Shown here: piece after piece, positions 20,533 through 49,000 of the stretch
Position numbering within the stretch: the first letter of the stretch is position 1
How the letters are laid out: each line of letters begins with the position of its first letter
Source of the DNA: Chara braunii
Lineage: Eukaryota > Plantae > Charophyceae
Direction of reading: 5' to 3'
Length of the DNA stretch: 64,000 bases
NCBI GenBank assembly: GCA_003427395.1
Contig: BFEA01000006.1
Span: 6,138,580-6,202,579, forward strand
Made by a program: the position numbers and the translations under genes
Notes under the pieces: model-generated
What the model saw: only the letters and a program-made list of their open reading frames with translations
Databases searched by the model: none
Told to the model about the DNA's origin: nothing

Positions 20533-20961
20533 AATCCCGATCTTGTTTACTCCCGGATCGCTCCGATCCACACTCAGTGCCTAGGCCAAACAGGGGTTCA
20601 GATGGGGCAAGTCTCACAGAAACTTCGACTTCGGCCCATGAAATTTTGCTCTGGTCTCGATATCGTTACGCCTCTCGTGAAGCCAAAGTCCAAATTCAGT
20701 CCAGACATCAGTCGCCCCTCGCATAGAAGGTGGTTCTGATTCCAATCAGAACAATCAGAACCACCTTCTATGCGAGGGGCGACTGATGTGTGGACTGAAT
20801 TTGGATTACGGTTTCGCAAAAGGCGTAACTATACCAAGATGAGAGCAAAATTTAATGGGCCCAAGTCAAAGTTTTTGTGAGACTTGCCCCGTTTGAGCCC
20901 CTGTTTGACCTAGGCACTGAACGTGGATCGGAGCGGTCCAGGAGTAAACTAGATCGGGATT
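20533..20961. repeat. 429-bp imperfect inverted repeat (fold-back)
   Basis: AATCCCGATCT...AGATCGGGATT at the ends; near-perfect inner arms around GGTTCTGATTCCAATCAGAAC. Confidence 0.92.
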
Positions 20962-38380: not shown

Positions 38381-40557
38381 AATTGTCACATGGAATATCC
38401 GGGGATTAGGGGATTCGAATGGTAGAAACAAACGAGGCCGCCTTAAAAGTTGGGTCCACGATAAAAAGGTCGACATAGTATGTCTACAAGAGACAAAGCT
38501 ATCCGAATCGAAAGTGATGGAGTTGGGTGCGTGGTGGGATGGTCTGCAAATTTGGTCACCAGCCCGTGGATCGAAGGGCGAAGTCTCTATCTTGGTTCAC
38601 CGTAACTTAGACTCAGAAATTGTGGATTTCAGTGCGGATTTGTGGGGTCGTTGGTGTTGGATTAAACTTTGGATGGGAAAACAGGAGTAGGTGATTGCAT
38701 CAATTTATGCTCCTACTAACAACAAAGAACGTGAATCATTTTTCTATTACCTTCCCTTGTTCATTCCTGACTGTGATAATTTAATTATTTCGGGAGATTG
38801 GAACACTTCTTTGGATAAGAATGATGAAACCAAGGGTAGTAGGGATGTCATAATATTAACTGACATGATATCTGACTTAGATTTATTGAAACCCTACAAT
38901 TTTTTACACCCTGGTAATCCGGGATACACCCGGGCTTCACATATCCGAGAGGGTAAATGAACTGTCAATAGAAGGCTTGACTTCTTTTTACTATCTGCCA
39001 GTGTTTGGAATGCTACAAGCGATATTTTGGAACAGGATAACACATTGTCAAACCATGAGTCTGTTATGGCTTACTTCAATGCAGCTAAGCCTGAAAGAGG
39101 CCCAGGAAGGACCCATGGGTCAGGGATTGGATGCATAGATTTTGGGAGGACTGGAAAAGGATCCAGGATACCTTTGCCTCAACTGCTGATTGGTGGGATG
39201 ATGGCTCCAGAATTTTCTCCAAACACCTGAGCATTTTCTCCCGCATCCTTGCGGCTGGGAAAAACCAACGAGAAGCTTCTCCAATCAAGAAGGTGGAGTA
39301 CGCTGAAAATTGGATGAACTTACACCCCATCTCTAACCTAGTGTGGAGCCGTATTAGGGAGAAACACATGGCAGAGTGAAATGCTTTTCAACAAGAACAA
39401 TCAGATATTTGGGCGGAGCGGCTTAAAATCAAAGGGATTGCAGTCTATGATCGCATGAACAGAGATTCTTTCCATAAGCTCGCACCAAAACGAATGACTC
39501 AGTCGATGAGTGTGTTGTCAGACCCCTTTGATCAGGCGCTTCCTGTCGCCTAGGATCAGTCTCAACTTTGTCTCTATGCTGCAATGTACTATCAAGATAT
39601 ACTAACAACTAGGCGCCTAAATGAGGATATTACTGAGGACCTTTCAGAGGGCTCAAACCACTGGTCTGCGTACACAACCTGACTCTCCACGCAGGGTAAG
39701 TTGGATATGAACCGCCCGATTACCGAGGAGGAAGCTTGGGAGGCGTTGCAATCCATGTCACATGGCAAAGCCCCGGGAGATGATGGTCTCCCGGTGGAAC
39801 TTTATCTGATTATTTGGGGGGACATTAAGAGGGAATTGGTTGCTATTTATAACCAAGTTTTGGAAGGAAAGAATATTTCGAAGGGTATGCGGAACGGGGT
39901 CATCTCCTTACTGTATAAAAAAGGGGATCGCTCGGAGTTTCGTAACTGGCGTCCGATCTCAGTGCTGAATGTGTCGTACAAATTGTTGGCAAAAGTCCTC
40001 ACTCGTCGATTAGGTCGATATCTGCCTTCATTGATTGAAAAAGATCAAGCGGCCTTTGTCCAAGGTCGCTCCATCTTTGACAATATAGCCACGACAGTGG
40101 AAGCCCTTGAGGTAGTGGAAAACACTAAAGCAAACACCTCGATTCTGATGCTTGACCTAAAGAAAGCTTATGATCGAGTCAATTGGACTTACGTACTTAC
40201 TACATTGCGACACGTGGGTTTCGACGAAAACTTGTGTAACTGGGTGGTAGCCCTGTACTCCCTTTCTACTGCCGCAGTTATGGTCAACGGCAACCTGTCA
40301 GAAACTTTCTCCCTGACAAGATCTTTACGCCAGGGTTGCCCCCTGGCCCCCCTCTTATTTATCTTGCAAATGGAGAATTTGTTATGCAACATAAGAACAC
40401 ATCCCCAGATCATGGGTATTAAGACTGGCTCCAGCCAATGCAAAGTCAAAGCATTAGCCGATGACTTGCTGACTATCTCAGAGAACTCAGTTAATTCAAT
40501 ATCAGCACTGGAATCCTGTCTTAATGAATATTCTGAGTTATCTGAAGCTTCGGTTAA

Positions 40558-40708
40558 ACCACCAGTACTTGGCCTAGCTATCGGCAGCAGAAAACAATAG
40601 AGTAGAAACGTTTCTAGTTGGATGAATTTGGGCGCTCCTGTAGTGGCTCGTACGTTTCCTAAAATTGCGTAGCGTTAACGCTACGCGACTTTAGGAAGTA
40701 CTGGTGGT
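40558..40708. mobile_element. 151-bp MITE with TTAA target-site duplication
   Basis: TTAA-ACCACCAGTACTT...AAGTACTGGTGGT-TTAA; excision restores the RT reading EASVNWSKS. Confidence 0.93.
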
Positions 40709-41659
40709 TTAACTGGTCTAAATCTGTGTTCTTCCTCCCTGCCCCTCTCTCACCAGTGGCAAATTGGGGAATGAAAAGAATAGTCGTCGGTAGCTCCGAA
40801 CGCTTTTTAGGTGTTCAGGTAGCCCTACTATCCTGTACAGTGGACTAAGAAGGAATACTTCTCCAGCACACACTGCAGAGAGTTTCTACCTGGGGAAAAG
40901 CCCCACATCTTTCTCTTTATGGCCGCATTATGGTGGTCAATGGGGCTCTTTTTTCCCTCCTCTGGTTCGTTGCTGTAATCCACCCTCTGGGGAGAAACTT
41001 ATGTGCCTCAATTCGAAGACGGGCTTCCAGGTTTATTTGGAAGCCCTTTGCCAACGACATTGATAGTTTCATGTCGAAAGTTGCTTGGGAACTCCTATGC
41101 TTTCCAAAGGAAGAAGGGGGGATGGGTTTAATTGACCCGCAACGTAAGAGCATAGCAATGTTAGTACGCTGGATCATTAGGGCTGTAAGCTCAGAGGAAG
41201 AGACACACTGGATTTCCTTGGCGGAAACCATCTTGGGCCTGGAATGGAACCTCTCCAGACCATCAGATACTTGGACGTGCCTCCTGCTACCCTCCTTTCT
41301 GAACAGAAACATTAAATCGGAATTCTGGAAAGCCATAATTTTGGCCTGGAAAAAGCTGCTACCTAACTCCTGGCTTCAGCCAACTACCAAGTCAGAGGTT
41401 CTCCTGCAACCACTGTTTGAGAACCCTCATATTCGGCATACAGACGGTAGGTGGTTTGCTGCTGATCACTCTCGGCAAAGCTTCGGAAGGAGATGGATAG
41501 AGAGGGGGATTTTGAGAATTGCATACCTGTGGAATGAGTGGGAAAATCAATGGCTGTCCCCAGCAGCACTGAGGGAATCTCTCGGCTCAGTGTGGTATGT
41601 TGAGGAAAGAATGTGCGGACTCATTGAGGCTATCCCAGCTTAGTGGAAGTTCATCTTAA

Positions 41660-41811
41660 ACCACCAGTACTTCCTACAGTCGCGTAGCGTTAACGCTACG
41701 CAATTTTAGGAAACGTACGGGCCACTACAGGAGCGCCCAAATTCATCCAACTAGAAACGTTTCTACTCTATTTATTTTCCGCGGCCGATAGCTGGGCCAA
41801 GTACTGGTGGG
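41660..41811. mobile_element. Second copy (152 bp, opposite orientation) of the TTAA MITE
   Basis: Reverse complement of 40558-40708; TTAA at 41656-41659 and 41812-41815; excision restores frame FILSPEGIDPPGTWY. Confidence 0.93.
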
Positions 41812-42973
41812 TTAAGTCCGGAGGGGATAGACCCCCCAGGCACCTGGTACGTTAGTCGCCCAATTGAGTCCTCCCCAACCCTCTGGAAACTTTTGAATAT
41901 TGACACCTCTGGCAAACGAACTTTCCAGTGTTGGAAGGGTAGTAGTCCTGAAAAGCCCGTTATCCCTCTGCAACAGGTAGGTCCCTCTCACCCACCCTTA
42001 ACAGCCGAACTAGCCCAAGCCCGTGTTTGGGAAGTGTGTGATGATGATGGGAAGTGGACCTGCAGAGTTTTTGCAGGGGGAACAGCGATCTCAGATCTTA
42101 AATTAGATCCAAAAATGTGGGGCTGGAGAGGGGAAGGTTTCGATGGTGATGACCGGGCCCTGGTATTCTACTCTGTTGAACAAGGTTACCTGGCCCAGAA
42201 GCCTCCTCGTACGCCTGCGTCAGTTGCAGTTGCTAGATGGAGACAGGTTTTGAATTGTGACCCAGAACAGATTGAGAGGAAATTAACTCGTTGCTGGGGT
42301 CAACTGAAGATTGCTCCTTTTCCTAGATTGGCGGTGAATCTTTGGCTTTTGTCCCTACTTGCTACCCCTTCGGCGGTGAACCTGTTTCAAAGAGGAATGA
42401 AGGTGGAATTGACTTGCAAACGCTGCAGTTGGGCATATGAGTCCACCACTCATCTGTGGTATGACTGCCCAGCATCTAAGAGAATTTGGGACTGGTGGCA
42501 GTCCTTTTGGGACGGTACCGTGGGTGGCAACCTGTTATGGGACCGCGAAAGGGTTCTCCTCGGTGGAATTCCTGATCACATGGATCTCAAAAAGGGCTGG
42601 GGCTATATAGCCCAAGCAGCCAGAGCGGCAGGGTGCTGCGTCATTTGGAAAGAAAGAAACCTGCGGATATTCGAGGACCGAGAAATGACAAACAAGGAAA
42701 TCAGAGTTTTATTCAGAATCTTCTCTGAGAAGAATCATTCAAGCCGATTGGAGAAGGAAGAACCAAGGATCTTGGTTCGGGGAAACTTGGGGCACAGGCG
42801 GGAAATTGGCGAAGCTTGAAGAAGGGAAATTGGTGTAGAAGTAGGATAGTCTTGAGTAGGAACCTGGTACTCTGTTCTCTTGATCCGCAGGAGGATGGCA
42901 GTCGGGCATACCAGTGGAGGGAGTACGTGACAATGTCGTGGTCCATTTTATGGACCATCCCGTCGTGTTAGAC

Positions 42974-43009
<36 letters not shown>

Positions 43010-43180
43010 AGAGCGGGCTTCAGGACAGCGGCGGCCTCGATTTGGTCACCTCTGTTCCTAGATTTTCCAGTGCTCTCTTGTGTTTGTTGAACGAGCTCGA
43101 GGCTCATAAGCGAAACTGGCTGATGCTGCCAGGATAACTCCGGCCTCGTTTTGACCTGATAATAAAGTAAGGATTTTGAG

Positions 43181-43215
<35 letters not shown>

Positions 43216-43805
43216 GGGAGGGGAATTGAGAGAAGAAAAAAAAAAATTGAGAGAAGAAAAAAAAAAAAACATGGATTGGGGCAAGCGACGGGGCCGGGAC
43301 GGGGCGGGACGAGGGCGGGACGGGAAGGCCCGCCTATGGGGTTGCTTGCATACTTCTTGTTGTTGTTGCGTGGCTGTGACACTGCGGTTTTGAACGAATT
43401 TTCGTAGATTGACATCAACGGACAGAAATCCACGCAACGTGGTTTGAAAGGTTGTTGCGGGGATTTGAGTTGATGTCAAATCGAGCGCACATAAATGACA
43501 TGACAATTCGGGTGCTGTTTGACGACGACAGCAGCACTTTCCCTCTCACACGGGTCAGCGGAGGGGGGCACAGCCATCAGCATTGGCAGGGCGGAAGGCA
43601 AGGAACTTGCGCGGGCGGGGAGAGGGGGGGTGGGCGTGGGAGGACATAGTCATCAGAATCGCGTCTCGAAGGAGTAGAGCGATCATCAATTCACAGGGGC
43701 CAGCAAGGAGCAGGACGGGCCGGACACACAAAAACTGGGCGCTGCAGATGTGGAGGGGCTGACTTGACAAGACGCATACTCTTCTTCTCGAGAATACCAG
43801 AGACC

Positions 43806-43822
43806 ATGTCACCTTGTCCTCG
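43806..43822 (+). CDS. PMK: Phosphomevalonate kinase, probable coding exon 1 (MSPCPR)
   Basis: ACCATG start, ATGTCACCTTGTCCTCG|GTATAT donor in phase 2, matching the phase-2 acceptor at 45684 to give MSPCPRVIASAPGK. Confidence 0.65.
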
Positions 43823-43832
43823 GTATATATGT

Positions 43833-43840
43833 TCTCTCTC

Positions 43841-43910
<70 letters not shown>
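43833..43910. repeat. (CT)n microsatellite at the start of intron 1
   Basis: Direct reading. Confidence 0.97.
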
Positions 43911-43914
<4 letters not shown>

Positions 43915-44402
43915 TAACTATATGAGGGAGGCATGGTTGTGACAGATACTTTCATCGTCTTTCGCTGACTCATCCGCAGGTTGAATCCTTTTTTTAAAAT
44001 TTTAATGAGAATCTTCTGGGTCTGTCTGTGTGGGTGTATTGTGTTCGCGACGCTCTTATCGAAGAAAGAATGATTAACCAATGAGTACTCGTCTGTATTG
44101 TTTGTTTTGTATCTTTTTTTTTTTTTTTTGTGTGTGTGTGTTTGCGCGCGCGCGCGCTCGTGTGTGAGAGACACAAGCAGTAAATGTGTCGGAATCCCAC
44201 GTAGAGCATGACCTCATCACGTCGCTTAAATGACAGACAGACGGCATACATCTTTATGCAATGAACCCGTAGTCTCTGCGTTTGCCCATTGCCCATGAAG
44301 GATAAACAATAATAATATCCCTAATATGATCACCAGGAGATGAACTATTGGATATGGACACCGAAGGTATATACATATTGATTTCTGTTTTTATATATGT
44401 AT

Positions 44403-44884
44403 GGGTTCAGCCTCCTGATGAGTCGGTAGGTGAAACTCCGACGAAACAGTTTGTCACAGCCCCTCGGTTGTTGTCCTCTTCTCCCTCTCTGCCTACGGTT
44501 TACCGGGCAGCTCTGTTTGACTAGATATCGTCACAAGCAGAACTGCCCGGTAAACCGTAGGCAGAGAGAGAGAAGAGGACAACAAACGAGGGGCTGTGAC
44601 AAACTGTTTCGTCGGAGTTTCACCGACTCATCAGGAGGCTGAACCCTCAACAGTCTGCAGAATCCCCTCACTGATTACACTGTAAATGATAATCTACCTT
44701 AACCAAAATCAAAGTAGACTATCACTCATCCACACCAGATGGAAAACTCTACAGACTGTCCGTTCACACCCCATCACAAGCCAGGAAAACATCCACGAAA
44801 CAAAGAAAGGTCTGTCACAGCCAAATATATATTGTCCTCGTCTCCCTCTCTGCCTATGGTTTACCGGGCAGCTCTGTTTGACGA
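44403..44884. mobile_element. Hammerhead-containing fold-back retroelement remnant (Penelope-like/retrozyme-like)
   Basis: Inverted pair 44403-44521 and 44528-44646, third partial copy 44813-44884; TA-rich flanks; no ORF. Confidence 0.72.
44600..44657 (-). ncRNA. Type III hammerhead ribozyme
   Basis: CAGACUG-UU^-GAGG guucag CCUC-CUGAUGA-GUCGG ugaaacu CCGAC-GAAA-CAGUUUG: all core nucleotides and stems I, II, III present; GUU cleavage triplet. Confidence 0.9.
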
Positions 44885-45242
44885 TATATATATATACATA
44901 TATATTTCTTGTGTCTTCGACAACTGTGGATTGCGTGTGGATCTCCATGTAGGAGGAGGCTGTGCTCAGCTTTTTTTTTTTTTTTTTTTCCCTCGAGGAT
45001 ACTACTTGTCTCACTCACCCTTCTTTTTGTTGTTCTTGAATTTTGTCATGTATTGCCTTTGGCAAGGCTGTTGCGCCACCCCCGCCGGTTTCGCCCAAGA
45101 CGAAGATCATTATCTGGTCCCAATTCTGTGTCTTGTGAGCGGAGTCTTTCTTGGCGGAAAAAAATTGAGTCTTCCTTCGCCACCCATCAGAAGGTTGGCT
45201 CTTTTGTTTTAAGCCTGGCTCAAATAATCGTCGATCTCTAGT

Positions 45243-45273
<31 letters not shown>

Positions 45274-45684
45274 AAGAAGAAGAACAAGGGGAAAAAAAAA
45301 AGGTTGGGTCAAGGAGTTCAACGCGAAGAAAAAGGAAAAGGAGTGTTTGACGCTTTTCGTCTTCCTTTTTTCTTACCCTGTTCTTTTGGGGAGTTGTAGG
45401 CCTAGCTCCGCTACTCGCGAGATGCACAAAAATACAGAAATCATGGCGGTGTATCTTTCCATGTTCAAGCGGAAGATTCATTCTCGTGTTTGCGCATGTC
45501 GAGACTAGTGGAGCGAGGACCTGTTTCTCTGGTGGGCAACGAAGAATCCATGTCAACTGGCAGCTCACTCCTTGCAGGTACAACAACTGATGCGTTTTTG
45601 TTTCTTGTTATGGGTTTTTATTTTCACTTTTTCATTTCTGAATTTTGTTTTGTTATATGTTTGATTTTGGCCATCTGGTTGTAG

Positions 45685-45835
45685 GGTGATTGCCTCTGCT
45701 CCTGGCAAAGTGCTGGTTACAGGTGCTTACTTGATTTTGGAGAGGCCCAATGCAGGCCTGGTGCTGTCCACGTCGGCACGGTTCTTTGCCGTCTCGGAAT
45801 TTCTGAATGATGCTGCATATCAGCAGATTGGGGAG
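45685..45835 (+). CDS. PMK: Phosphomevalonate kinase exon 2 (GHMP kinase N-terminus); the rest of the gene is not seen in this window
   Basis: VIASAPGKVLVTGAYLILERPNAGLVLSTSARF matches the plant PMK N-terminus; TGTAG acceptor and GAG|GTGAGG donor. Confidence 0.92.
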
Positions 45836-46010: not shown

Positions 46011-49000
46011 TGGCTTTAGTCGATGGTGACTCGTTGCTACCATTATAGTTTCCAACCAGTGGTTGAACCCTTCTGTTCAATGACGAATCAATTTCTCGAA
46101 GGCCGTCTCAATTTCTCGAAGGCCGTCTCGATAGCTCTCTGTTGGTCCTCACAGTTGAAGACTGACTTCTAGGGANNNNNNNNNNNNNNNNNNNNNNNNN
46201 NNNNNNNNNNNNNNNNNNNNNNNNNNNNNNNNNNNNNNNNNNNNNNNNNNNNNNNNNNNNNNNNNNNNNNNNNNNNNNNNNNNNNNNNNNNNNNNNNNNN
46301 NNNNNNNNNNNNNNNNNNNNNNNNNNNNNNNNNNNNNNNNNNNNNNNNNNNNNNNNNNNNNNNNNNNNNNNNNNNNNNNNNNNNNNNNNNNNNNNNNNNN
46401 NNNNNNNNNNNNNNNNNNNNNNNNNNNNNNNNNNNNNNNNNNNNNNNNNNNNNNNNNNNNNNNNNNNNNNNNNNNNNNNNNNNNNNNNNNNNNNNNNNNN
46501 NNNNNNNNNNNNNNNNNNNNNNNNNNNNNNNNNNNNNNNNNNNNNNNNNNNNNNNNNNNNNNNNNNNNNNNNNNNNNNNNNNNNNNNNNNNNNNNNNNNN
46601 NNNNNNNNNNNNNNNNNNNNNNNNNNNNNNNNNNNNNNNNNNNNNNNNNNNNNNNNNNNNNNNNNNNNNNNNNNNNNNNNNNNNNNNNNNNNNNNNNNNN
46701 NNNNNNNNNNNNNNNTGTGCCTTAAACGAGGTTATCAGGACTCCCAGAAGGCTAGCACCAGTACAACGCACTTTCCCCCTTACATTGATGTCAGGTTCAC
46801 CCGTTCGCTTTCGTCTTACTACCGTAGAAAAGTGACTGGCTTTGTAACATGGGCTGAACAGAGTATAGGTCTTACCTGGCGAAACACTGGCTCTTCCCAC
46901 TTATTATCACTAGCTGTTCATACCGTGCCAGTTCACAGCGGTGGGACAGAGACCAAACAGACTAATATTCTTGACGTCAACTATGGAGTCGAGGGAAATG
47001 CTTCATCTCCCTCCTGCTCTTACGTATATTATTACTATCAAGCCATCACATAGCACCAGGCACGTTTTCCAGCCCGCTCGTTCACACACAAAAGAAAAAA
47101 GAAAAAAAAAAGAAAAAAATCGGGAAAACATTTTGACAATAGCATTATGCTCATCGCTCTCCGGCCGTGCGGACTACTCGCGCGAAGTCTCTCGCGTCAG
47201 CCCGTCCAGGTAACTGGTGGCGACAACAACAACCCGCTTACACAGCTAGCGCCTTGCCACTCTGATTCCGCTCGATCTGCAAATAGCGAGCAAACATATC
47301 CCCTTTCTCATCTCACCCATTCGAAGAAGGCAACATTGAAAGGTCACGGGACCAGAAAAGCGCGAGCGAACTCAGACCTCTCCTCGGGTGAAAAGAGGGA
47401 CGATCGTCCAACATACAGTAAAGAGGGGGGAGCGCCGATCCCTCAAATTGTTTCACGACTTCCGTCTTTTCCCTTTTCGCTTGGCTGCCAAGGCAGGTGT
47501 AGTTTGGCAGTATCTCGCGAGCACCCCTACCTCAAGCCCGTGCTCTCTCTGCACGCATTGCGTCGCTCAACCTCTCCGTACTGTCAAGTTGCGTTGTCCC
47601 TCTCGACAACAGCGCGTACACTACATTACTTTCCCCGCACGCCGTGATCACTGGTGGGACACGACTATCATAAACTTGCAGAGGATGATGACGTCAACGA
47701 GTCACGGGGCACCCCACGTCTGGTTTTTTCTCTCTTTTTCTGCCCACCTGAGCCGTGACACACACTCGTCGTCTCGCTGGCTGCCCACGTGTAACCGCTT
47801 TGACCTTCTCTTCGCGGCTCGCTTGCATGTGTTGACCTCTGGCTCCCCTCTCTATCTCTCCCACTTGTTATGATCACTCACACACCCTTCCTTTTCCTCC
47901 CGCCTTTCTTGTCCCACGTCCTCTGGGACTCCGCTGCCGCGAGCAAGCCTCGGGCTCGCCTTCCACAGGTTGTGCCAGAGGGTGGTTCTTGCGAACCTGG
48001 TCCGGCCTGTTCCAGGACTGAAGGTCAGTCTCCCGGTCTCCAGCCTCACTCATCTCACTCTCGCCGCCTAAGTCCCTGTCAAGGTGGGCTTGTTCTCGGT
48101 CCACCGTGTCTACTGAGGTCTCAGTCTCATGATACGCGACCGTTACCTGCATCCTCGCCGTCACCCCGTCCCTCCTGCAGCGTCGCTCGGCCCGATCCTT
48201 GGCTTCCGTAATAGCGTCTTGCAGCTTCGCGGTAGTTCTCATCTCTTCCTCCTTAACCCCCTCCACATTAATCTTTAGTCTCAGTTCGTCTCCCCCATCA
48301 TAACTGAGCATCACCGTAATCCAGGGCCCTTCCCTAGACATGGGTTTCCAGCGCGTTTGGAGGTACCAGTAGCCTGGTCTATAGCCGTGCAGTGCCATAG
48401 CCAGACTTTTCTCAGCACACCTTGCACCAGCCCAGTTTACCGCCCCAGAGTAGTCAGGGCCAAACCGCTCAGCGTGCAAGCAGACGCACACTAGCAATCT
48501 CCCGTTCGCTCGCTAAGGCTGCCTAGCCTCCCACCAGCAATAAGCTAATACTCATCATAGCGAGGTCGCTCAGGCCTAGCTTGCTAACGCCAGCCCCTTT
48601 TCCCTCTTATAAGATTTACGTTTACCGTGATCCTCGCGCTCTAGACGAGGGGTCAAATTGAATAAAGTCAATTACTAAGATAAAAGAAAATACTTTATTA
48701 AGAGGAAAGAGTTAAACCCAACAGACAACAGGGAAAATTAAAAGGAGTACGCCAACGGTCGTAGGGCCAGCCTCTTGCTCAAAAGGACCGCTGTGCTTAG
48801 CACGATGGTCCTATAACGGAACCCCGACCGACGCTCCGCTCCCTTAAAAACGAACCACCGGCCTGTCTCTTTCGGGTACCCGTGTCTGTTGGCAAGGAGG
48901 GGGTTCATGACCTCCTATAGGGGGTGATGGGCTTCCTACCGATGCGGTCGTGGGTCGCCCCTCTTTTGGGGCCTCACCGTGCGGGGCTCAACCATACAGC

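Follow-up and report, generated by a model that had tools for sequence, protein, structure and literature searches.

A stack of inverted copies of a short hammerhead-bearing element, a putative retroelement, near the PMK gene of Chara braunii

The Locus and Its Neighbourhood

The window, the whole 64-kb stretch of Chara braunii DNA that was analysed, carries near a PMK gene a short non-coding element that, judging from the alignments, is present there in four clustered copies (Table 1). Three of them, copies A, B and C, form a stack within TA-rich DNA, with A and B arranged tail to tail and B and C head to head; copy D lies 420 bp upstream of the stack. No coding capacity was found in the element when its open reading frames were read.

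The presence of the PMK gene and its plus-strand orientation are confirmed by the open reading frame from 45686, which matches the profile TIGR01219 Pmev_kin_ERG8 over profile positions 2–53 with an E-value of 6.1e-14; this result concerns exon 2, with the conserved N-terminus, alone. Only a few residues can separate the start codon from this exon. When the putative first coding exon (ATG GCG GT, then a gtatct donor) is joined from 45443..45450 to 45685, across an acceptor ending at 45684, the sequence reads as an N-terminus ending in the ASAPGKV motif. The likeliest start codon of PMK is at 45443, and on this reading of the splice sites the first intron would be 45451–45684. The start codon would then be about 560–1040 bp downstream of the stack, which would fall within the promoter, the 5' UTR or an intron of the 5' UTR. 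The original prediction had placed the hammerhead in PMK intron 1, which is not supported, as the likeliest start codon, at 45443, is downstream of the stack. It had further been proposed that the antisense orientation of the cleavable copy relative to PMK is what makes the insertion tolerable. The plus strand of the locus does lack a cleavable hammerhead; a single locus, with a prior of 50% for either orientation, cannot show selection, and the proposal is not supported. No role of the locus for the neighbouring PMK gene has been demonstrated. A comparison of the PMK exon with PDB entries returned only chance antibody matches, which were discarded.

The 5' flank of PMK is unusually rich in simple repeats, which include a homopolymer-dense run at 42970–43270 (T and G tracts of about 38 and 36, respectively, as well as runs of A), a (CT)n microsatellite at 43822–43909 and (GT)n/(GC)n at 44131–44156. 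The homopolymer-dense run lies between the last open reading frame of a LINE and the PMK upstream region. A 540-N assembly gap occupies 46176–46715 inside the PMK gene region, just past the first coding exons. The LINE itself, at 39701–42819, is broken up into several open reading frames that encode RVT_1 (E 1.6e-32) and, at the C-terminus, a zf-RVT domain, and the ten best relatives of its reverse transcriptase are all Chara braunii proteins with 49–61% identity. Elsewhere in the window, a long inverted repeat at 20540–20960 (arms about 200 nt, centre near 20750) has a foldback or MITE-like appearance; it gives a generic miRNA-precursor score of 77.5 bits against a gathering score of 144 and is unrelated to the hammerhead family. 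A U6 snRNA-like match at 432–484 (29.7 bits, gathering 44) could be a fragment or a pseudogene.

Table 1. Positions of the element copies, their parts and flanks, and the PMK exons in the window.
Feature	Position	Strand	Basis
Copy D: decayed, ribozyme-dead	43911..43989	minus	blastn 73% over 56 nt, E 0.008; alignments
Probable target-site duplication, left copy	44368..44386	.	17/19 identical to 44891–44909
T/TA-rich filler from the left duplication copy to the 5' end of copy A	44387..44402	.	sequence reading
Copy A: headless, keeps the full 3' domain	44403..44521	plus	alignment to B
TA-like, nearly palindromic 8-nt spacer TAGATATC separating A and B at their 3' ends	44522..44529	.	sequence reading; inverted repeat with 14-nt gap
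Copy B: 171 nt, apparently full-length; 44-nt leader, hammerhead and 3' domain with conserved hairpin	44530..44700	minus	alignments
Conserved 3' hairpin CUGCC..CGG UUUA CCG..GGCAG	44543..44564	minus	best-kept segment of A, B and C
Type III hammerhead of copy B, self-cleavage predicted	44601..44656	minus	Rfam RF00008; fold; structure common to L002
10-nt junction at which B and C face each other with their 5' ends	44701..44710	.	alignment; sequence reading
Copy C: 172 nt, 5' end as in B, hammerhead core destroyed (no CUGAUGA), 3' block well kept	44711..44882	plus	alignment
(TA)n-like tail 3' of copy C	44883..44890	.	sequence reading
Probable target-site duplication, right copy	44891..44909	.	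17/19 identical to 44368–44386
Putative first PMK coding exon	45443..45450	plus	inferred from sequence
PMK exon, conserved N-terminus	45685..45835 (3' end approximate)	plus	TIGR01219 Pmev_kin_ERG8

The Hammerhead Ribozyme of Copy B

A complete hammerhead had been predicted on the minus strand at 44657–44600. This was borne out by the Rfam model Hammerhead_3 (RF00008), which aligned over its whole length (model positions 1–54) with the minus strand at 44656–44601. The score was 45.8 bits, with E-values of 9.8e-10 in a local search and 7.8e-7 for the window in full (64 kb). Rfam has curated a gathering score of 48.5 for this model, and copy B lies 2.7 bits below it, so that a gathering-level Rfam scan of the 64-kb window lists nothing; such a scan returned zero matches. 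The catalytic core is complete, with CUGAUGA, GAAA, the A15.1-U16.1 pair and U17 all present. In a test of the core by position (C3 U4 G5 A6 N7 G8 A9, G12 A13 A14, A15.1-U16.1, H17), every position was found. A search of the sequence with a variable-gap pattern of the core matched only copies A and B.

The RNA of the motif can be written as AGACUGUU^GAGG-loop-CCUC-CUGAUGA-helix II-GAAAC-AGUUU. Helix I has 4 bp and the loop GUUCAG, helix II has 5 bp and the loop UGAAACU, and helix III has 7 bp. Both the Rfam alignment and the minimum-free-energy fold show loops capping helices I and II, whereas helix III is open, and the fold of the isolated motif is a three-way junction with an energy of -22.7 kcal/mol and a z-score of -2.25. 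The hammerhead of copy B is, on these grounds, a real type III motif, for which self-cleavage is predicted. The cut is expected between 44649 and 44648 of the minus strand, GUU^G, after the U at 44649. A GUU triplet is cleavable, and weaker than GUC.

Loop 1 (GUUCAG, minus strand, 44636–44641) and loop 2 (UGAAACU, 44611–44617) can form three Watson-Crick pairs, GUU with AAC, and the AAC of loop 2 is kept in copy A and in the related sequence L002 described below. This pairing may represent a loop-loop tertiary contact in the hammerhead.

The Copies and Their Boundaries

Copy A starts at 44403 with GGGTTCAG, which is 2 nt past the predicted cut. Complementarity is 100% to 44622–44646 and 95% over the 94 nt that follow. 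Neither the cleavage site nor the 5' strand of helix III is present in copy A, and its loop 2 has a 4-nt insertion. Its hammerhead scores only 27.9 bits with Hammerhead_3 because flanking sequence takes the place of the 5' strand of helix III. The start of the plus-strand copy and its missing parts are thus as had been predicted. A leader remnant was sought in the upstream flank of copy A and none of significance was found (894 of 2000 shuffles score as well). The chance that a random 5' truncation would end within 2 nt of the cut is 0.029, about 3%.

The anatomy of B and C was obtained by aligning the minus strand at 44528–44725 with the plus strand at 44695–44892. The two copies start with nearly identical nucleotides (AAGGTAGAT in B, AAAGTAGAC in C). 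At their 3' ends A, B and C all stop at ..GAC, which is followed by TA repeats, and the spacer between A and B is interpreted as what is left of a (TA)n tail. This alignment changes two earlier claims about the right half of the stack. What had been taken as a third partial copy at 44813–44884 is merely the well-kept 3' part of copy C, which is roughly full-length (44711–44882). The supposed central unit with terminal inverted repeats also disappears, as its 'unique' centre at 44647–44810 consists of parts of the head-to-head copies B and C, of about 171 nt each.

The stack is flanked by a 19-nt direct repeat with 17 identical positions, a value equalled in none of 1000 shuffles and in none of 145 AT-rich control windows. 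It is a probable target-site duplication.

In copy D, the homology to B starts at A/G 2–3 nt past the cut position, with a run of A before it. On its 3' side lies TA-rich sequence, followed by the (CT)n microsatellite at 43822–43909. A leader-like 11-mer was found upstream of copy D (13 of 2000 shuffles score as well), and given this 11-mer the boundary of copy D is ambiguous and an internally deleted full-length copy is possible.

Divergence of the Copies and the Conserved 3' Hairpin

The identity between A and B is about 92–93% throughout (92.6% from the cut to the 3' block). In contrast, B and C are 61% identical in the 5' part and 89% identical in the 3' block, the last ~51 nt (Fisher p 1.8e-4); over these last ~51 nt A and C are 96% identical. 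Neutral decay of one duplicated palindrome would be less uneven, so copy C most likely derives from a different source RNA, the ribozyme of which was already dead. That B and C share a 5' end despite the 61% identity of their 5' parts likewise speaks for two source RNAs, each with a defined 5' end, and against a single palindrome that was duplicated.

The best-kept segment of the three copies is a 3' hairpin, with counterparts at 44489–44510 in copy A and 44850–44871 in copy C. All 22 nucleotides are the same in A and B and 21 of the 22 in C, where the sole change turns a C-G pair into U.G and keeps the structure. The hairpin is a candidate recognition site for the reverse transcriptase, and we infer that this enzyme requires the 3' hairpin and the tail. 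Since copy C is ribozyme-dead and yet has retained the hairpin, the ribozyme seems dispensable for copying.

Folding in Context

The minimum-free-energy structure of unit B by itself (171 nt) contains the hammerhead, with helix III lengthened by a GAGGGG/CCCCUC clamp. As the isolated unit keeps the hammerhead fold with helix III clamped, it appears to be built to act as a monomer. The fold predicted for a minus-strand transcript of the whole locus is different: it consists of two long hairpins, with -316 kcal/mol and a z-score of -24.6, in which the leader of B pairs with the leader of C, and the core and tail of B pair with A. A and B together form a near-perfect hairpin of 113 nt, and copy C retains an 11/12 complement of the 5' strand of helix III of B. 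In this model the ribozyme at the locus would be trapped unless transcription begins within B. The read-through fold swallows the ribozyme, and 'intact' therefore does not mean active in this context.

Several miRNA-precursor models matched at 44440–44612, all far below their gathering scores. These are the generic scores of a long perfect hairpin and were rejected as genes.

A Related Hammerhead in a Metagenome Contig

Metagenome contigs were scanned with 24 nt of the copy B ribozyme. The scan matched BFBZ01011546.1 (L002), a contig of 1534 nt, which has a perfect terminal redundancy of 86 nt and so represents a circular or tandem unit of 1448 nt. A type III hammerhead lies at 559–614 of L002 (37.1 bits with Hammerhead_3). 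It is identical to copy B in helix I, in loop 1 and over ~13 nt upstream of these; the cleavage triplet is GUA and the first pair of helix II is G-U. In the consensus fold, helix III differs from that of B by one compensatory change, C-G to U-A, and by a change from G-U to G-C. These changes give modest independent support for a structure under selection. The flanks of the L002 hammerhead are unrelated to the 171-nt unit. The contig is pyrimidine-rich and has (CA)n tracts, both short, at two places. Possible identities are a circle of the retrozyme kind and a tandem, non-autonomous element derived from a Penelope-like element (PLE).

Another match of the 24-mer among the metagenome contigs, L001, is GC-rich and bacterial-looking, lacks the GAAAC half and was set aside as a chance match. 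A scan of viral contigs gave no match. Further copies were also sought by a protein word search with a spurious 46-aa open reading frame across copy B, and none were found.

Comparison with Known Hammerhead Elements

The closest known systems are found in the same organism. Chara braunii has two PLE subclades, Chlamys-2_cBra and PLE-X, with canonical hammerheads (PMC8557442). Insertions of PLEs show 5' truncation, an inverted 5'-truncated copy that abuts the 5' end, and microsatellite targets (PMC8557442). These Chara PLEs and non-autonomous derivatives of PLEs (e.g., MRC1 of Chlamydomonas) resemble the copies described here in the hammerhead near the 3' end and the frequent 5' truncation. They are also alike in the inverted copy abutting the 5' end, the microsatellite-like insertion and target duplications that are long or hard to define (PMC8557442). 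An architecture of this type was found at the locus, where B and C lie head to head across a 10-nt junction, A is truncated at the cut, and flanks and tails are TA-rich. The suggestion of a PLE-like inverted insertion, made in the original prediction, was thereby upheld: the locus agrees with published PLE insertions in its head-to-head pair, its TA-rich target and its long target duplication (PMC8557442). The difference is that here the unit is ~171 nt long and has no reverse transcriptase or GIY-YIG open reading frame, either in the element or nearby. A Penelope-like open reading frame was sought in the 64-kb window and none was found, the large open reading frames being LINE and Gypsy only. 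The published target sites are (CA)n and (C)n for Chlamys and (TA)n for the Naiads of animals (PMC8557442). The target here is TA-rich, unlike that of Chlamys, and the likeness to these elements concerns the architecture of the insertion.

Published hammerheads of PLEs are of type I, not type III; they are minimal in animals and canonical in Selaginella (PMC4209133, PMC7761336). For animal hammerhead elements, which are non-autonomous, a PLE-derived origin has been proposed (bioRxiv 10.64898/2026.07.22.740005). The type I hammerheads of metazoan PLEs and the animal non-LTR retrozymes share with the present element that they are short, non-coding and thought to depend on PLE machinery, and opposite-strand pairs of their motifs, 100–700 bp apart, have been reported (PMC4209133, PMC7229834, bioRxiv 10.64898/2026.07.22.740005). 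They differ in the ribozyme, as the type I motif often has a vestigial helix III, with which it works only as a dimer, whereas the type III motif here has a stable 7-bp helix III and folds as a monomer. The animal non-LTR retrozymes are also arranged as head-to-tail tandem repeats of 150–400 bp from which circles can be excised, whereas the copies here are inverted and dispersed.

The LTR retrozymes of plants (Cervera et al. 2016, PMC4918200) are alike in their type III hammerhead, in being non-coding retroelements and in belonging to the green lineage. However, they have an LTR pair, a primer-binding site, a polypurine tract, a 4-bp duplication and a length of 600–1000 nt, as compared with 171 nt and a 19-nt flanking repeat here; they are inserted by a Gypsy integrase (PMC4918200), whereas the insertion at this locus looks target-primed. 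No tRNA-Met primer-binding site was found in 44300–45000 (0 matches with up to 3 mismatches in a 12-mer), nor does the locus have a direct LTR pair in which each member carries a cleavable type III hammerhead, as A lacks the site and C lacks the core. With a PLE-like insertion and neither LTR pair nor primer-binding site, the locus behaves like a non-autonomous element, or the tail, of a PLE.

The HDV-like ribozymes of LINEs (R2, RTE, L1Tc; PMC7761336) offer a further parallel, in that a self-cleaving RNA sets the 5' end of the template that is copied. In these elements the 3' product retains the ribozyme, and what is copied from it can still be cleaved. The copy here, by contrast, is ribozyme-dead on arrival, because a type III hammerhead loses the 5' strand of helix III when it is cut.

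Proposed Mechanism

The best explanation, which we regard as somewhat better than an even bet, is that the locus is a stack of ~171-nt non-coding Chara braunii retroelement copies with palindromic (TA)n tails. The anatomy can be read off the alignments, and the steps given here are the working it suggests. The element was probably copied in by Penelope-like machinery.

A unit would consist of the 44-nt leader, the type III hammerhead, the 3' domain with the conserved hairpin and a (TA)n tail. The element RNA would be transcribed, and a fraction of it would cleave itself at GUU^G. A reverse transcriptase supplied in trans, most likely from a PLE, would recognise the 3' hairpin and the tail, and reverse transcription would be primed from a nick in TA-rich DNA. 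From uncleaved RNA a full unit would result, such as B or C. Cleaved RNA would instead yield a headless, ribozyme-dead copy that starts at the cut, such as A and perhaps D: the 3' cleavage product would keep the hairpin and the tail, and its reverse transcription would give copy A with the 19-nt duplication. As (TA)n is self-complementary, a new RNA can prime from either strand. A later insertion into the tail of A in the opposite orientation would produce the tail-to-tail pair A/B. Twin priming, in which both nicked strands and two RNAs are used, would produce the head-to-head pair B/C with its tails pointing outward, copy C being made from a separate, ribozyme-dead source RNA that had kept the 3' hairpin. 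This model reproduces both the A/B and the B/C junction, and it accounts for two copies, B and C, that share a 5' end and differ in sequence.

The original prediction held that the plus-strand copy is the reverse transcript of a self-cleaved RNA. The start of A so close to the cut speaks for it, as does the start of D at the same place, ambiguous though it is; the number of cases does not, as A is the one clean case. The clean cut-linked 5' end is known from copy A alone, and self-cleavage is a prediction from the motif. The weak points of the mechanism as a whole include the score 2.7 bits under gathering, the weaker GUU triplet and the helix I of only 4 bp, and further the type I class of the published PLE hammerheads, the (CA)n and (C)n targets of Chlamys and the lack of a Penelope-like open reading frame in the window.

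Alternative Explanations

The most serious competitor, which we consider possible and well short of probable, keeps the same insertion mechanism and regards the copies as heavily 5'-truncated 3' ends of an autonomous hammerhead-bearing Chara PLE of the Chlamys-2_cBra or PLE-X type. Chlamys-2_cBra has a 'canonical 3'-HHR', 5' truncation is very frequent in such elements, and inverted 5'-truncated copies are found at the 5' end (PMC8557442). However, B and C come from different sources and share the nucleotide at which they begin, and a defined 171-nt unit fits this better than the random truncation of a 5-kb element.

It is improbable that the unit is a SINE-like element mobilised by a LINE, its RNA being trimmed by a hammerhead that is a passenger. 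LINEs classically leave target duplications such as the 19-nt one seen here, along with 5' truncations and twin-priming inversions, and a LINE that encodes RVT_1 and zf-RVT is found at a distance of 1.5 kb. However, no similarity was found between the tail of the element and the 3' region of this neighbouring LINE, the tail is (TA)n rather than poly(A), and hammerheads and head-to-head insertions are published hallmarks of PLEs. Pol III promoter boxes were also looked for by eye; the resemblance to A and B boxes was unconvincing and was dropped.

A foldback or inverted duplication made at the DNA level, with its edge at the cut by chance and possibly kept as a hairpin or a source of small RNA upstream of PMK, is quite improbable. 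It would account for the near-perfect A/B hairpin and for the stability of the whole-locus fold, and the miRNA-precursor matches would suit it as well, though they are generic and sub-threshold. It does not sit well with an edge no more than 2 nt from the cut (p about 0.03) and a copy D that starts at the same place, nor with a TA tail at the end of every arm and arms that differ in pattern and age.

Very improbable is a plant-type retrozyme or viroid-like circular RNA locus, in which the RNA between two ribozymes is excised and circularised: type III hammerheads are typical of plant retrozymes (PMC7761336) and a related one is carried by the terminally redundant 1448-nt unit of L002, but the locus has one cleavable ribozyme only on its strand, copies that are inverted rather than tandem, and no direct LTRs with hammerheads, tRNA-Met primer-binding site or 4-bp duplication.

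Implications

The mechanism favoured here, copying by Penelope-like machinery, leads to a broader proposal that we put forward tentatively and judge to be rather less likely than its negation. Chara would have a lineage of ~170-nt type III hammerhead retroelements that are copied by this machinery into (TA)n, where self-cleavage gives rise to headless copies and the self-complementary tail to inverted stacks. The novelty may lie in a type III, monomer-competent ribozyme on a PLE-like element or tail, which could be the truncated tail of published Chara elements. The locus adds a clean case of a start at the cut (copy A), a copy that is full-length and ribozyme-dead and yet keeps the hairpin (C), and a mechanical account of inverted stacks. 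The 5' ends of genomic copies would give a simple and direct read-out of cutting by the ribozyme.

Type III hammerheads have so far been tied, in flowering plants, to LTR retrozymes and to viroid-like RNAs. If the proposal is true, L002 could be a circular or tandem relative of the lineage, and the lineage would connect the type I hammerheads that PLEs and animal retrozymes carry with those of type III in land-plant retrozymes and in viroid-like RNAs. A type III hammerhead on an element that inserts like a PLE in a streptophyte alga would bear on the origin of the ribozymes of plant retrozymes and viroids.
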